NCBI GenBank assembly: GCA_004431415.1
Contig: QPMI01000054.1
Location: 186,001 to 250,000 of the forward strand
Reading direction: 5' to 3'
Length of the DNA stretch: 64,000 nt
From: Cyanophora paradoxa CCMP329
Lineage: Eukaryota > Plantae > Glaucophyta
Position numbers and translations under genes: made by a program. This document shows positions 8,922 through 46,300 of the stretch, piece after piece. Every line of letters begins with the position of its first letter. Position 1 is the stretch's first letter. Below the pieces are notes generated by a model. That model searched no databases and was not told where the DNA came from. It was given only the letters and a program-made list of their open reading frames with translations.

Positions 8922-11900
8922 ATGGGGGTGCGCGGCCTCACCGCGTACCTCGAAAGGAGCGAGGGCACCGCGCAGGACGTGAACCTCACCGAGGTGAGGA
9001 ACAGCTCGAGCGCGCACGCGAACCGCGGGCCGCTTGCCCCACCATCCCCGCACCCTCTCCCGCCGGCCCGTGCAAATGTATTCGCGCGTGGGCCCACGTA
9101 CGATCGCAGGTGGCTGCAGGTCGCCCGGGGAATGAGATCGCACTCGTCCTCGACCTGTCAAACGTGAGCCGGCGGCGCCGCAACCCCGCCCTGCAGCGCA
9201 GCTTCTTTACAATGACTCGATTCGAAACAGATCGCGTACACGCTCATCCAACAGGCCGCCGAAGAAGCTGCGCAGCTGGGCGGCCGCGGCGATGTCGACG
9301 GACCCGCCGCGGCGGCCGGCGGTCGGAGTCTTTACTTCCTCGTCAACATCTCCGGCGGTGCGCCTTCGCGCGTCGACCGGACGGCAGCGCGCGGCGGCGT
9401 CGGCGTCGCAAGCGCGGCGGCGCCAAGCGGTCGCGCGCTACAGCTGACGCGCGCGGCGCCTCCTCAGGCGAGTACGACCTGCTGGACGCGCACGTGGAGC
9501 GCTACTTTGGCCGCCTGCGCGCCGCCGGCGTCCGCGCCCACTGCTTCCTCGACCCCGCCAAGGCCCGCGCCGCCCGCCGCCCGCCGCGCCGCGCGGCGCC
9601 CGTAGAAACGCCAGAGCGCGCCGGGCGCCGCGCCGAGCGCATGCCGACGGATCCTCGCGCGCGCGCGCAGGGGTCGGACGACGACGAGGAGCGCAAGTTG
9701 GCGACGTGGACGGAGCGGCTGATGGAGGACCGGCTCGGCGCGATGGCCCTCCAGAAGTGGTGCTCCACCGGCCGCGGCGCCGTCGCCGTCGGCGGGGCCA
9801 GCGGCGCTACCGGCGGGGGCCCGGGCCCCGGCGCCAGCGCCCTCCGCGTCCCCGTCCCGCCCCTCGCCTTCCGCCAGATCATCCGCACGCTCCAGCGCCT
9901 GCAGGCGAGCCCCCCGGCCCACCGGTCTTATCGTCTTCGGCCCGCCGCTGACCCGCCGCCCGCAGGTTCCTGTCTCCATCTGCACCGGGTGCGCGGGCCC
10001 CCTCTCCTCCGCCTCGCGCCTGCGGGCGACTCTCGCCCAGGGAGGCGGACCAGCAGCTGCTGCACGAGATGCGCCGCCGCGGCGCCTTCGCGATCGTCTC
10101 AGACGACTCCGACTTCGCTGTCATGAGCGGTGCTTTGTTAACAGAGCTCTCAATGCGTCGCGACGCCTCTCGGTGATCTCTCCCCCACCTCAGGGTCCCG
10201 CTGGATCCCGACGCGGACGCTGCGGGTGCCGACGGCGGAGGAGCTCGCGGCGGGCGGCCCCGGCGCCTGCGCCCGCGCCCGCCTCCTGACCCCCGACCGC
10301 GTCGCCGCCGCCCTCGGCGTGCCCCTCCCCGCCTACCCGAGCTCGCCGCGGTGCGCCGTACCCCCTCCCCCCCTCCGCCCCTCCCTCCCTCCTCCCCCTT
10401 CCCCCCTTCCGCCCCGGCCCCTCTCCTCTAACTCCTTGCCCCCCCTCCCTCCCCCGCTCCCCCCTCCCCCTTCCCCGCTCCGCCCCCTCCCCTCTCCGTC
10501 TTTCTCCCCCTTCCCTACCTCCCCCCCCCCCCCCCCCGCCACCTCACCTCCCCTGGGCCCTCCCTCCCTTCCCCCTTCTCCCCCCTCTTCCTCCTCCCCT
10601 CCTCCCTCTCCCCCCCTCCCATCCCCTCCCCTCCCCCCCCTTCCCTACCCCCCCCCCCGCCCCCTCACCTCCCCTGGCCCCTCCATCCCCCCCCCCCTTT
10701 TACTCCCCTCTTTCCCCTCCTCGACCCCTCCCCGACCCCTCCCCCTCCCCCACCTTCCCTTCCCGACCTTTTCCCTCCCCACTTCCCCCCGCTCCGCCCC
10801 CGCCCTCTACCCCCTCCACCCCACCCACCGAATCCCGCCCGAGCCCTTCGACCCCGGTGCAGCTGCTCGGGAACGACGTGACGAAGGCCGCCGTCGCCGC
10901 GCGCGACGTCCTCCGCGCTCTCGGCGTCCCCGCCGCCTGGGGCCGCCCCAAGGCGGGCCGCCCCTCCCCCAGCCCGGCACCCGCCCCCAGCTGAGGGAGC
11001 CCAGGTCGAGGACGTGGCGGCGTGGATCCGCGGGCTCCCCGGCCGCTCCGCCCTCTCCTCCCCGGCCCTCCGCGGTGCGGCTGACCGATTCGATTTCCAG
11101 CGCCTTTCGATCCCGATCGCGCCTCGCGTCTCACTCGCGCGCCCTCGGCCCTCGCAGACCTCCTCGCGCGGCACGCCGACCTGCGCGAGGCGTGGGAGCG
11201 CTCCGCCGCCTTCTACATGTGCGAGGCGCCGCCGCCGCCCACCGCCGACGCCCGCCTCGCGGTAAGCTCTCTCCCTCATTATCTTGCTCGTCGCTCTCCG
11301 CTCACGCCGCCCTCAGTTCCTGGAAGGCGGCGTGGCAGAGGGGATCCTCCCCGGCCACGCCATCGCCGTCGCCCGCTTCGGTGCGCTCCGAGCTCGCCCC
11401 CGCCGCCGCCGGCGCCGCCCGCTCTGCCCCTGACGCGCCCCCGTGGCCAGGGCGGCACTGGAGCTCGGCGCGGGCGGAGTGCGTGCAGTGCAGCCGCTCG
11501 CCCTCCTCGGACGAGCTCGTGGCGCCGCTGCGGGCGGCCGGCTACGCGCTCCTCGGGCGCGACGAGGTCGAGGAGCGCGTCGTCGAGGCCGGTGCCTGGT
11601 CGCTGACGCGCCGCGTCGTGCGGGCCTTCCTCCCGCACGCCGCCCGGCACGTCCCGGACACCTGGGCCGCCCGCGCCGCCCCTCCCGAGGCGCGCCGCCG
11701 CGCCCTCGCCGCCATCCTTCACACCCACATCCCTTCCGCCCCGCCGGACCCGCCGGCGGGTCCGCTGGGCCCCGCCGCCCTCCTCCTCCGCTACCTGCTC
11801 TCGCTGGTGCCGGCGAGCGGGCTGGACATGACCGTCCGCGAGTGGCGCGCCATCCTCCTCACCGTCGCCGCCTGCGCGCGCGCCTCGAGCTCGTCGCCGC

Positions 11901-40579: not shown

Positions 40580-41214
40580 ATGGCGCTGACGGACGAGGCG
40601 CCCCAGGCGACCTCACAAGGGTGCGCCATGCTCTGCGCCGCGTTCGCCGCGGCGGCTGCCCGTCGAAGCGCGTCCGCGCAGACAGTCGTTGGTGAGCTCT
40701 TCGTGACGGTCGACGTCGTTGGTGCACGTGGCGGGCCGGGCGTTTGGGCGACGGATCCGGAGGAGCTCGAGGGCGCGGGGCCCGCGCAGGGCCCGGGCCC
40801 CGGCGACGCGCCGGTCCTCCCCGAGGTACGCTTCCACGAGCTCCCGCCCGCGTGCCGCTCTCATGATCAACCACGTCGTCGGCATTCAGCCGGACGGAGC
40901 AGGCGAGCCGCAGCGCGCTGGAGTTGCATGCACGTTCCGCTGAGATCGCTGCGCGCGGGGCGGACTGATGGAGGACGCGCCCCATGGACCCCGCGGCCGG
41001 CCCGCGCGCTGCTCGCGATCGTTCCTCGAGCTCCGCAGCGCGGCGTTCCGATCCGTCCGCGCCGCGATGCGCTCCCTGCGGCGGAGCGATCGGCGCCGCC
41101 AAGCCGCCGCTGCTCAGGGCGAGGGCGAGCCCGCGGCGTCGGCCGCGCGCCGAGGGCCCCGCGGACGACGAGGGGGCCGCGGCGGAGGCGGCGGGGCGCG
41201 AGGAGCAGATCTAG
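40580..41214 (+). CDS. Small multi-exon hypothetical protein, head-to-head with the FN3-SLOG-SLATT gene
   Basis: Plausible exons MALTDEAPQATSQ, TVVGELFVTVDVVGARGGPGVWATDPEELE and AEAAGREEQI* with GT-AG-like boundaries. No family recognised. Confidence 0.35.
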
Positions 41215-41633
41215 AGCGACGACGAGGAGGACGCAGCGGGCCGCCTCATGCAACAGGTCCCTCCGTTCCCTCGGATCGAATACACGACGCGCACGTTACA
41301 TGCAACCGCCACATGCTGAGATCGGATCTCAGCGGGCCCGCAGACATGCGCATGCACTCCCTCTCTGCTCGTGGTACGAAGCCCTCGCGCGGCGCCCCTC
41401 AGCCTGGCAGAGTCCGACCCCTCCGCCGGTGCTCTCATTATACGATTTGCAAATTCAAGTGATCAAATGTGCATTTCTTTTAGCCTCATCGAGAAGCTAC
41501 GTACACGACGTTACACAAGTGACCGCAAGCTTAAGCCAGGGTTCGAAAGGGGCAGAATTTAAACCTAGCTTAAGCGCTTTGATCTGCATGCGCATGCATG
41601 CACTGCGCGGAGGGTGTCACAGTGTGCAATCAT

Positions 41634-41790
41634 GAATGTGCACCGCCGGATTGAGACTGCGTTCATGGATAGTCCGGCAGTCTCACCTAGACGGCACTAG
41701 ACGCTCTTGGGGGAGTTACGTGCGCCTGTCAGAGCACGGTTCCGGGTTGTGGGCCCGGGACCGCTCCGGGCGTATAGCGAGCCCCCAAAT
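41634..41790 (-). ncRNA. Box H/ACA snoRNA, copy 1 (3' pocket guides the LSU A-loop uridine, i.e. the yeast snR10 / human SNORA21 site)
   Basis: The minus strand folds as hairpin - AGAGCG (H-like box, 41702-41707) - hairpin - ACA (41637-41639) + 3 nt. The 3' pocket GGUG / CAAUCCG pairs with rRNA GGAUUG-U-U-CACC. The 5' pocket UCGCUAU / ACGU pairs with GCGU-U-C-AUAGCGA. Each pocket is 14 nt from its box. Confidence 0.85.
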
Positions 41791-41873
41791 AGAATTAGAA
41801 AGCGACGGAAACGAACGCCAATTTGATGGGGGCGGGGCAGCCTGGCAGATGGGACTATAGCGGGATCGGGATC

Positions 41874-42030
41874 GAATGTGCACCGCCGGATTGAGACTGC
41901 GTTCATGGATAGTCCGGCAGTCTCACCTAGACGGCACTAGACGCTCTTGGGGGAGTTACGTGCGCCTGTCAGAGCACGGTTCCGGGTTGTGGGCCCGGGA
42001 CCGCTCCGGGCGTATAGCGAGCCCCCAAAT
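41874..42030 (-). ncRNA. Box H/ACA snoRNA, copy 2
   Basis: Identical to copy 1 at a 240-bp period. Differences between repeat units fall in the 83-nt spacer. Confidence 0.85.
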
Positions 42031-42113
42031 AGAATTAGAAAGCGACGGAAACGAACGCCAAATTGATGAGGGCGGGGCAGCCTGGAGGATGGGACTATAG
42101 CGAGATCGAGATC

Positions 42114-42270
42114 GAATGTGCACCGCCGGATTGAGACTGCGTTCATGGATAGTCCGGCAGTCTCACCTAGACGGCACTAGGCGCTCTTGGGGGAGTTACG
42201 TGCGCCTGTCAGAGCACGGTTCCGGGTTGTGGGCCCGGGACCGCTCTGGGCGTATAGCGAGCCCCCAAAT
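42114..42270 (-). ncRNA. Box H/ACA snoRNA, copy 3
   Basis: Two substitutions versus copy 1: one in the hinge (42181) and one at 42247 that converts a G-U into an A-U pair in the 5' hairpin. Similarity stops essentially at the predicted RNA 5' end. Confidence 0.85.
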
Positions 42271-42493
42271 CGAATACGAGAAACGAAAATGGCGGTGGCG
42301 CAGGCGGAAAGGGGCGGCTTCGTGAGGTTCAGCGACGGGAGGCGGCGGGGGCGGGGGCGGCGAGTGGCGGCGCGCGATGAGAAGGGCATACAACGTATCT
42401 GCACTGATCAGCAAAAGCACGCAAACCTATGCTAGCCTGGGAATGTACACGCTAGGGGAGAGGAGGAGGAAAGGGAGAGAGCTAGGGGAGCGC

Positions 42494-42803
42494 CTAGTAC
42501 TCCTGGGCGGGAAGCTGTGTTGGCAGAATGCCGAACCGCTTCTTGCAGATGATCCTATGCCGCGAGAACTTGTCGTCCGGCGAGAACCGCGCTGCGAGGG
42601 AATGGCTCGGCGATGGTCGCGGCGGCGCAGGCTAGATGATCTACGTGATCGGCAAACACTCACCGGGATGAGCGGACCGCGACGCATTGCCGCAGTCGTG
42701 TGCTTTCTGCGGAAGCGTTGGCGAAGTTCGCGATGGATCGCGGATGGGGGCGGGGCACCTTCAGCGTGTACTTCGAGCAGTGGTCGCAGTACATGAGATG
42801 CAT
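42494..42803 (-). CDS. NOP10: H/ACA ribonucleoprotein subunit Nop10, 61 aa, 3 exons (42803-42759, 42706-42664, 42591-42494)
   Basis: Splicing two GT-AG introns gives [77 protein letters not shown] and KKRFG are diagnostic of Nop10. Confidence 0.97.
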
Positions 42804-43312
42804 TTTCGCGGAGCTTCACTCCCTGCGGGGCGCCGATCGCGCGGATTAGTCGCCATCGCCGCGCGAGCGATCGGGGGCCCCAAGGCGACGGAGCTGGCGA
42901 GCTAGCAATTCCACAGCCGCCCTTGGGCGACCAGAACACACGGGAAGAGGCGCTGTGGCGCAGTTCGGCGCACCTGCGTTTCCGGGGTACAAACTGACCA
43001 GCTTCTATTGCGCGTACCCCTGTAACGAGCCTGGCACAGCCTCGCGAAACCGGCTTCGCCAGCAATGAGACGCAGAGAAATAGCTTCAGGGGCGCGTTCA
43101 GCGCAGGATTGAGCCTCTGCACGCCGCCCCGCTCGGTCCCGCCGACGTTGAACCTCCGTCCCAGTTCCTCTCCACGGCAGCACCCCAGCTAGCGCCGCCG
43201 AGCTTAGCTAAGTCCGGATTGTAGGTCAGCGCAGCTGACGGCGGCCTGCGGCTGGCGGATCCTGTCCCTCCGATCATCCGTTCGACACGGCTAAAGCAGG
43301 AGGCCCGCAGCC

Positions 43313-46300
43313 ATGACGGAGCAGAGGCCACACTCGACCTCACACTCGAGGCCAGGATCCCGCGTTCATTCGAGGAGAGAGAGCACGGCCGAGTCGGCTG
43401 CAGACGATGCGGCGCCGCCGGCGTCGACGCCCGCGCCGCGGCTGCCCCAGACGCAGTCGGCATCCAGCGGCGCCCAAGGGCATGCAGTGGGATCGAGGCC
43501 ACGCGCTCGGGTCAGCACCGTGGGCCTCTCGCTCTCTCTGGAGCCCAGGTCCGCCCGCCCGCCGCCGCGGCCCTCCGCCCCCCGGAGCGTCGCCGCCGCC
43601 CGAACGAACGCCGCCGCAGCACGATGGCGGGGATCGAGCAGCTCCGCGCGTGCGACTTCAGGCTGTACGACCCGCGGCGGCCCGACCCCTTCCGCGACCT
43701 CCAAGTCGACCCGGCGACGTGCGCGTGCATGCGGATCGAATCTCCGGCCCGCGGCGCCCCGGCCGCTGACCGTGAGCCGGGCGCAGGGACTCGGACAGCG
43801 ACTCGGAGGGGGGCCACCTGCCCGCCGAGGAGAAGGAGCCGTACCCCCAGGAGGCCTCGTTCGGCTCCATACCCCAGCCGGAGCTGGCGGCGGTGGCGGG
43901 GGCGGGGGCGGGGAGCGTGCCCGAGATCTCGCCGCAGGGCTCGGCGGAGGAGATCGGGCGGCAGGGCTCGCGCGTGCGCATCAGCGCGGCGAGCCTCCCG
44001 CCCATCGACGACGCCCTCCCCCGGGGCGCCCTCACCGACCGCGGCCCCCGCCGCCCCGAGGGCGAGCCGCCGCCCGCCGTCCCCGCCCCGCCCCTCACCG
44101 CCCGCCCCGCCGCCGCCAGCCACCCCGCATCCGCGCCCTCAACCAGTCCTCCTCCGAGGCCCTCCACCAGGTCCCGCCGTACCCCCACCCCGCCGGCCAG
44201 CCGCGTACCCCCCTCCGACGATCCCGCCCTCCGCTCTGCAGGCCTCCACCGATTCCCTCGCCTCTTCCGCCGCGGGCCCCGTCGGTTGGCGCCGCGTTTT
44301 CGCTCCCCGCGTTCGCATCTCACCCCGTACCCCTCTCCGCAGAGGAGCAGTTCCCGCCGGGTGACGACCCCCGGGCCGCCTTCTTCCGAATCTTCCAGAA
44401 CCACCGGAAGGGCGCGCGCCGTGTACCCCCCTCCCCGCCGGCGTCGCTGAGGTACCCCCCAGAGTCCACGAGCCAGCTTCCCCGGAACCCGACCTCGCGG
44501 CACGTCTTCCTCCAGTCGACCGACGCCAACTTCCTCCGTGCGCGTACCCCTTTCCTGCCCCCACCCCGCGCCCCCAACGCCCCCGCCAGTGCCGCTGCCG
44601 TCGGTGGTGCCGCGGGACGAGCACGGGGGCCGGATCCGGCTGAGCCACTTCGGCCTCGGCTCCCGCTACGGCGTCGCCGTCGCCGACTCCATCAAGGTAC
44701 CCCCCCTCCCCCTCCCCCTCCCCTCCTTCGCGGGAAAGCTCAGCTTAGCGGGGGGCAGGTGCACCCGACGGCGGCGGTGCTGGAGATGCGGGCGAACCGC
44801 CTCACCTCGGGCCCCGCCATCGCCCTCGCCCACACCATCAGAGTCAACGCCCACGCGCGCACTATGCCTCCCCCCTTCTCGCCCCTGCCTCCTCCCCCTG
44901 ACTGCTCCCCAGATCACGTCGCTGGACCTGTCGGCGAACCGGATCGGGCGGGAGGGCGGCGTGGCGGTCGCCGACTGCCTCCGCGGCGCCTGCTCCCTCA
45001 CCCACCTCGACCTCGGTGCCCCCTCTCCCGCTCTCTCCCTTCGTTCTGTTCTGAGGCCGCGTGCGCAGGGGGCAACAAGCTGGGGGACGGGGTGTGCAGG
45101 GAGGTCTGCCAGGCCCTCATCGGCAACGACTCGGTGCTCTCCCTTAGCCTCGCCGACAACGACATGGCCCACCTCGGGTCCGCTTTCGCCACGCCACGCC
45201 CGCTCCGCCCCGCACGGCACCGAGCCTTACGCGCTCTTCGCAGGGCCGCCGAGCTGGCCAAGGTCCTCATGGCGAACAAGGTAGCCGGCTACCCAGCTCG
45301 CCGCGAGGGGCGGCCCGCTCGGGGGCGCTGCTCACCCACGCCCGGCCGGCGAGCAGACGCTGCGGGAGCTGGACATCAGCTGGAACCACCTCCACGGCGC
45401 CCGCGCCGTCCTCTTCGGGAAGTGCGCCCGCGCCCCGCCGCGCCGGCAGAGCCTCCCCGCCTCCCGCCGCGCGGGGTGCTCAGGGGGCGGTGCAGGGCGC
45501 TGGCGCACAACGGGACGCTGGAGGAGCTGCGGATGGCGTGGAACGGCCTCGGCGACGACGGCGGCATCGAGATCGCGCAGGGCCTCCGCGCCAACACCGT
45601 ACGTCCGCCCCGCCCGCCGGCGGCGATGCAGGGCCGGCCGCTGAGGGGGGCGGGCGGGGGCAGGGCCTGGTGACGGTGGACCTCTCTGCCAACGGCCTCA
45701 CCGAGCGCCCGGCGCGCGCCCCCGCCCCCGCCCCCGCGGACGAGGGCGCCAGCTGACGGGCGGGGCGGGGCAGTGCATTGTCCTGGGGGCGGCCCTCAAC
45801 GAGAACAAGACCCTCAAGGAGGCCCGCCCGCCCGCCCCGCCCCGCCCCGCCCCGCCCCGCCCCGATCTGGAGCCCTGACGCCGGCCGGGGCAGGTGCGGC
45901 TGGGGATGAACCCGGTGGGCCAGAAGGGCGGCCGCGCCCTCGTCCGCGCCATGAGCAACGCGTCCGCCCCGCCCCGCCCGCCCCTCCCCGCCCCCTCCGC
46001 CCTGGAGACCGAGGCGCCGGGTCCGGGCAGGTGGCGGCGGCGGACTGCGGAGGAGGCGGACGCGGAGGAGCCGGAGGAGGAGGAGGAGGCGCCCGTCCCC
46101 GTGCGCCCTCCTCCCCGCAGCTCGCGCCCTTCCTTCCTTAGGCGCGCAGGCGGGGATGGCGGCGCAGGCGGAGCGCAAGATCGACCTCGCTCGCTGCAAC
46201 TTCGAATGCGCGCCCGCCCCGGCCCCGCCTTGGCCCTCCGCCCAGCCTAGAGCCACCCCTCACCTGGGCGCAGGCACGACGGAGACGGGGACGAACCGCT

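Follow-up and report, generated by a model that had tools for sequence, protein, structure and literature searches.

The NOP10 gene and the array downstream of it

The 64-kb stretch of Cyanophora paradoxa DNA analysed here (the window) carries, on the minus strand, a gene for NOP10, a core protein of the H/ACA RNP. The gene is followed on the same strand by a short tandem array of H/ACA-like units, which lies in the gap of ∼860 bp between NOP10 and a convergent gene on the plus strand. As read from the sequence, NOP10 has a coding region spanning 42803–42494 and divided into three exons (42759–42803, 42664–42706 and 42494–42591), the last of which includes the stop codon TAG (42496–42494). The two introns, of 52 nt (42707–42758) and 72 nt (42592–42663), are both of the GT..AG type. 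Both are present as spliced joints in three RNA-like public assemblies, where they were recorded as 'skips 52, CT..AC' (42706 to 42759) and 'skips 72, CT..AC' with a k-mer depth of 309–430. These three RNA-like runs (X15, X17 and X19), together with one DNA run (X4), were available as assembled contigs, and the libraries of the RNA-like runs were probably of the poly(A) type. The genome is GC-rich, and each DNA run comprises ∼100–120 Mb of contigs.

Exon 3, which encodes the C-terminal motif region, matches the Pfam family Nop10p (PF04135) with a score of 31.4 bits against a cut-off of 27.2 (E=2e-7). For the protein search, exon 3 was extended upstream in the same open frame to cover 42497–42631, which brings full-length Nop10 proteins inside the length filter. 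This query retrieved 130 Nop10 proteins, 69–88% identical to it, from a collection of 5.8 billion proteins. No identical protein was present among the 130 homologues, so the NOP10 product seems to be absent from the public protein collection, and the gene seems to be unannotated or mis-modelled in public annotations. A preliminary description of the locus had proposed a three-exon minus-strand NOP10 ending at 42494, a model now corroborated by the spliced joints in the three RNA-like runs and by the Pfam match.

Downstream of the stop codon, the spliced NOP10 contigs (depth 309–430) delimit a 3' UTR of 42368–42493, their ends lying at 42402 (X19), 42385 (X15) and 42368 (X17), albeit contig ends are no proof of an RNA end. 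These positions are 92–126 nt past the stop codon and about 95–130 nt before the first unit of the array, and a UGUAU element (42392–42388) is found just upstream of them. On the 5' side of the gene, the X17 contig departs from the genome at 42827 and its next letters resemble the upstream sequence 42979–42988; in addition, a low-depth X19 contig at 42828–42978 fits a retained intron. The 5' UTR of NOP10 is therefore probably interrupted by an intron of 151 nt (42823–42973).

The convergent transcript (40585–41663, plus strand) contains three GT..AG introns, 40620–40680, 40824–40887 and 41254–41329, the last of which is partly retained. Its last seen exon (41330–41663) is represented in X15 by a contig that starts exactly at the 41330 intron acceptor and terminates at 41663, 30 nt into the outermost unit of the array, in antisense orientation to it. 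By composition this exon has no coding bias (GC3 0.55) and appears to be non-coding, and the open reading frames of the convergent gene matched no Pfam family.

Tandem Repeats Finder (TRF) detected one array, at 41634–42275, with a period of 240 and 2.7 copies, a match rate of 97% and an absence of indels. Nothing else of its kind is present in the window apart from a C-rich low-complexity stretch near 10.4 kb (tandem repeats with periods of 39–121 at 10361–10697). A BLAST search with the 157-nt unit found exactly three copies in the window, all on the minus strand: copy A (42114–42270; 98.7% identity), copy B (41874–42030; 100%) and copy C (41634–41790; 100%). Unit alignment places two spacers of 83 nt between them, at 42031–42113 (A–B) and 41791–41873 (B–C). 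The stop codon of NOP10 is separated from the first unit by 223 nt, and a linker (42271–42367) extends from the apparent end of the NOP10 mRNA to copy A; it holds a GC-rich simple repeat (42341–42364) and ∼25 nt homologous to the 3' end of the spacer. The three same-strand units of 157 nt, the exact 240-bp period and the distance of ∼220 nt given in the preliminary description are all confirmed, and the units indeed lie outside the two NOP10 coding introns, downstream of the coding sequence.

Copies B and C are identical, whereas copy A differs from them at two positions of the unit, 24 and 90. The two spacers differ from each other at six positions, and past copy C the homology is lost immediately after ...GCACAUUC, that is, right after ACAUUC. 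The observation that the RNA portion is nearly invariant while the spacers drift holds up statistically: the divergence is 2/157 between copies A and B and 6/83 between spacers A–B and B–C (Fisher p=0.022). Position 24 is occupied by A or G and pairs with U60, giving either an A-U or a G.U pair, so that one of the two changes preserves the structure, as had been noted before. At the second position (42181), run X17 reads A, the letter of copies B and C. Concerning the spacers, only the A–B type was seen in X4 and X17 and only the B–C type in X15, with the caveat that holes in contig data prove nothing. These run-to-run differences in spacer type and at 42181 suggest either strain polymorphism with homogenisation within the array or a mosaic reference.

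The possibility that the triplication is an assembly artefact, raised in the preliminary description, was addressed using the DNA run. In X4, the unitig common to all copies (41874–42006) has a depth of 154.7, compared to 49.7–53.4 for the flanking single-copy contigs. The ratio of ∼3 indicates that the triplication is probably real.

Structure and possible targets of the 157-nt unit

Box H/ACA snoRNAs are stable RNAs bound by Cbf5, Nop10, Nhp2 and Gar1. They are characterised by a hairpin-hinge-hairpin-tail structure with an H box (ANANNA) in the hinge and an ACA box three nucleotides from the 3' end. As guides, they display bipartite complementarity to rRNA or snRNA around an unpaired U-N, and the top of the guide pocket is positioned 14–16 nt upstream of box H or ACA.

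The predicted minimum free energy structures of the 157-nt unit and of each of its halves contain two hairpins with a single-stranded hinge and tail (z=−3.3), and each of the three copies folds as hairpin-hinge-hairpin-tail ending with ACAUUC. The 5' hairpin (HP1) is composed of a lower stem of 7 bp, a symmetric internal loop of 9+9 nt (CUCGCUAUA / CACGUAACU) and a long upper stem. Directly after HP1, at the start of the hinge, lies AGAGCG (RNA positions 84–89), the only candidate for the H box; its A1 and A3 fit the ANANNA consensus, and its last position is G, not A. The distance from the top of the HP1 pocket to AGAGCG is 14–15 nt, fitting the H/ACA rule. The 3' hairpin (HP2) has only a 4×4 loop, located 12–13 nt from ACA, and is therefore probably a scaffold and not a guide. 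The ACA box (152–154) directly follows HP2 and is itself followed by UUC, so that the edge of conservation falls exactly three nucleotides past ACA.

The opposite strand deserves consideration, as the plus-strand fold is no less stable than that of the minus strand (−75.8 vs −67.5 kcal/mol). The A/G variant is also tolerated on the plus strand, through a register shift, and consequently does not fix the strand. With both fold energy and variant fitting either strand, the strand assignment rests on the boxes and the conservation edge. A plus-strand H/ACA reading was rejected, since that strand lacks an ACA and copy A does not preserve the AUA-like tail. In the predicted structures, the box H/ACA architecture fits on the minus strand only.

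As to the kind of H/ACA RNA, we take an identity with U17/snR30 to be unlikely, the strands of the HP2 loop being unlike the m1/m2 motifs. A scaRNA reading was discarded upon inspection of the terminal loops, none of which contains a UGAG CAB box. Rfam searches returned nothing relevant at the gathering score for the whole window, or at E≤10 for the region 41300–42500. Homologues were sought by a guide-anchored pattern scan of metagenome contigs, which produced three unrelated chance matches only. With no homologue found there is no covariation, and the sole variation in the predicted pairing is the A-U/G.U alternation at pair 24–60. The literature that could be searched yielded no description of the snoRNA repertoire of this alga.

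In order to look for guide targets, both pockets were compared with the SSU, 5.8S and LSU rRNAs of a plant (locus L035, verified with Rfam), that is, with plant rRNA and not the rRNA of the organism itself. When shuffled guides were used for comparison, no significant guide site emerged in this plant rRNA. The best site, U1496 of the SSU (18S) rRNA, involves 11 bp with one mismatch and was equalled by 31% of the shuffled guides. It varies among eukaryotes, as judged from a short 18S stretch whose anchor is present in 11 of 14 hand-picked plant-associated or environmental loci. The main text of PMC8351944 mentions no pseudouridine near this site. The window itself, including NOP10, was also scanned, and only background scores with no better match were obtained.

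The rDNA loci came from contigs filed as bacterial. Two of them, L035 and L002, were checked with Rfam, and none of those used looked human. The other loci, some of which may be human rDNA contamination, were left out of the analysis. Eukaryotic 18S-ITS-28S rDNA, which represents host or contaminant DNA, is present in more than 100 contigs (L001–L102) that are catalogued as bacterial or archaeal; L035, for example, is a complete plant rDNA operon inside an assembly of a Candidatus Burkholderia leaf symbiont. No rDNA was detected in the viral contigs scanned.

The imperfect H box, the fact that both strands fold equally well, and the failure to find a target, an Rfam family or a homologue would speak for a repeat that is non-functional and not a working guide RNA, as would the plus-strand transcripts that appear to enter the array (see below). 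Against it are the ACA exactly three nucleotides before the conservation edge, the correct spacing between pocket and box, and an RNA portion more conserved than the spacer, and we regard this explanation as quite unlikely. The units are, in our judgement, likely to be H/ACA snoRNA genes. The observations are best explained by an orphan, lineage-specific H/ACA family in a layout of a known kind.

RNA-like coverage of NOP10 and the array

Assembled contigs show neither strand, ends nor levels of transcripts, and they would fail to reveal a read-through precursor that is short-lived. Within these bounds, the coverage of the locus is uneven. None of the three RNA-like runs contains a contig over 42247–42334, a region crossed by a DNA contig (42217–43500), and no contig in X15, X17 or X19 joins the NOP10 exons to the array, although rare or unstable precursors would escape such contigs. 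The array itself, spacers included, is covered at a depth of 5–23, corresponding to 1–5% of the NOP10 depth. The lack of a bridging contig, the ends of the NOP10 contigs short of the array and the low relative depth together make a stable mRNA-snoRNA polycistron unlikely.

This bears on the operon-like cassette envisaged in the preliminary description. The identities of its parts, NOP10 and H/ACA-like repeats on the same strand, have stood, while the shared transcript has found no bridging contig. The description had also considered that a NOP10 end before ∼42280, combined with a start site of the array's own, would speak for adjacency only; as to the first of these two points, the abundant mRNA does appear to end at 42368–42402. 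NOP10 and the array may still share a promoter by read-through.

The runs differ in what they suggest about the origin of the array coverage. In X15, the array is represented by a single collapsed repeat contig of 270 nt (depth 22.8), and coverage continues into it, at a matching depth (10.1 for the exon), from the 3' exon of the convergent plus-strand gene, so much of the array coverage may be antisense 3' UTR of that gene. The other two runs point away from an antisense origin: X19 has a contig at 41519–41757 but none on the convergent gene's upstream exons, and X17 covers the array and neither of its flanks.

The main alternative to transcription from NOP10 is that the two are merely adjacent, the array being an independent polycistronic snoRNA cluster driven by its own promoter within the ∼100–220 nt upstream of copy A, in the manner of intergenic clusters of plants and yeast. 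This would account for the NOP10 contigs that end short of the array with nothing bridging the two, and for the X17 coverage confined to the array; moreover, intergenic clusters with their own promoters are a standard layout in plants and Ostreococcus (PMC7671301). On the other hand, NOP10 is highly expressed and on the same strand, and its termination zone leaves very little room for a promoter; upstream of copy A no promoter motif could be recognised, and the holes on either side of the array in X17 may stem from strain divergence or from filtering. We consider an independent promoter rather unlikely.

Another arrangement that would place the array within a NOP10 transcript is a minor isoform polyadenylated at a distal site, such as one following the UGUAA at 41515–41511, in which the array would be part of an extended 3' UTR or of a 3'-UTR intron. 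The array is on the NOP10 strand, this UGUAA is found 119 nt past copy C, and pyrimidine-rich CAG sites resembling acceptors lie 29–36 nt past each ACA box. The X19 contig mentioned above is in line with such an isoform, and precedents exist (PMC1821038, PMC2656528). Yet no contig links NOP10 with the array, and the NOP10 contigs end at three places and not at one donor site. The array was also considered as the content of an intron of an extended NOP10 transcript, and this was rejected, as no CT..AC joint spans it. The only long joints, from 41194–41205 to 42341, are seen in the DNA run as well and arise from a GC-rich repeat. Overall, we find the distal-site isoform very improbable.

Simple repeats of the GGCGG type (42341–42364 and 41172–41205) create false 'joints' of 1.1 kb in RNA-like and DNA assemblies alike, and these could pass for an intron spanning the array.

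Proposed read-through from NOP10 and related gene arrangements

RNA polymerase II runs hundreds of nucleotides beyond poly(A) sites. H/ACA RNPs assemble co-transcriptionally, and intronic snoRNAs are matured by exonuclease trimming down to the protected particle. NOP10 is highly expressed, and the array begins ∼100 nt past its apparent poly(A) site on the same strand, which makes transcription of the array by unterminated polymerase almost inevitable. The reading that we prefer, tentatively and with somewhat less than even confidence, is that the snoRNAs are trimmed from a short-lived NOP10 read-through RNA.

According to this reading, one lineage-specific box H/ACA snoRNA would be encoded at the locus by three gene copies, tandem and homogenised, with a unit of 157 nt, the 5' hairpin of which would carry the guide pocket. 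The copies would lie outside the stable NOP10 mRNA, ∼100 nt past the apparent end of the abundant message. Most likely, RNA polymerase II would continue beyond the site of NOP10 poly(A) cleavage and transcribe the array, and H/ACA proteins would assemble on the hairpins as they emerge. The cleavage would supply a 5' entry for trimming of the uncapped RNA downstream, of which 5'-3' and 3'-5' exonucleases would leave only the protected particles of 157 nt. In this way, the NOP10 promoter would serve the subunit as well as one client guide in three doses, with no bicistronic mRNA involved. A stricter version, in which read-through is obligatory and the NOP10 promoter drives subunit and three guide doses in a splicing-independent host-gene mode with coupled dosage, is conceivable, albeit doubtful.

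Several known systems resemble this arrangement. In algae, Ostreococcus among them, and in plants, tandem or polycistronic snoRNA clusters are standard (PMC7671301), and intronic snoRNA clusters occur in Chlamydomonas (Chen et al. 2008, as cited in PMC7671301). As in these algal and plant clusters, near-identical snoRNA isoforms are arranged head-to-tail downstream of NOP10 and are presumably trimmed from one precursor. In contrast to them, the NOP10 array is in no recognisable intron, lies past an apparent poly(A) site and overlaps a convergent 3' end.

The physical linkage of a core H/ACA RNP protein gene with its own client guides is also seen in human DKC1, which hosts the H/ACA snoRNAs snoRA36 and snoRA56 (PMC6466398). 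The DKC1 guides, however, are single-copy, intronic and released by splicing, whereas those of NOP10 are present in three copies downstream of the coding gene. A closer likeness in position is offered by the Drosophila dyskerin orthologue minifly (mfl)/Nop60B, which has a snoRNA cluster in an alternative extended 3' UTR (PMC1821038). There too, the proximal poly(A) site of a gene for an H/ACA core protein is followed on the same strand by tandem small-RNA isoforms. They differ in being C/D snoRNAs and ncRNAs of unknown kind, in lying within introns of a distal-poly(A) isoform that has been documented and in having transcripts demonstrated by experiment, while the NOP10 array is known from sequence and contigs. 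In Plasmodium, the snoRNA PFS9 resides in the 3' UTR of RPL7a (PMC2656528), likewise a few hundred nucleotides past the stop codon of a ribosome-related gene and on its strand. PFS9 is a single C/D snoRNA whose link to the mRNA was established by RT-PCR and ESTs, whereas the NOP10 array is unlinked in the assembled RNA data.

Judged by this comparison, the linkage of subunit and guide is not new, and the layout of the array would be a modest variant of known arrangements; its position after the gene is possibly of interest. If the read-through origin is true, the array would provide a natural case of snoRNAs matured downstream of the poly(A) cleavage site of the host, with neither an intron nor a promoter of their own, and another example of guide RNAs supplied by the gene of their own RNP subunit. 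It would thus bear on the way in which snoRNA genes shift from one layout (intronic, UTR or independent) to another. At present, the main gain from the locus is an unannotated NOP10 gene together with an orphan family of H/ACA snoRNAs.

Two further features of the NOP10 region were apparent. Upstream of the gene and divergent from it, the plus strand contains an open frame of 786 codons (43313–45673), with only a sub-threshold match to LRR_6; the intervening 42804–43312 would be a bidirectional promoter region shared by NOP10 and this frame. The N-terminal half of the NOP10 protein (42664–42803, minus strand) is short and carries C6, C9, H18 and C20, while all 16 eukaryotic Nop10 proteins retrieved have the usual cysteine-free form, M(Y/H)LM(Y/F)Y..G.RVYTLKK. 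The Cys/His set may be a remnant of an archaeal-like zinc ribbon.
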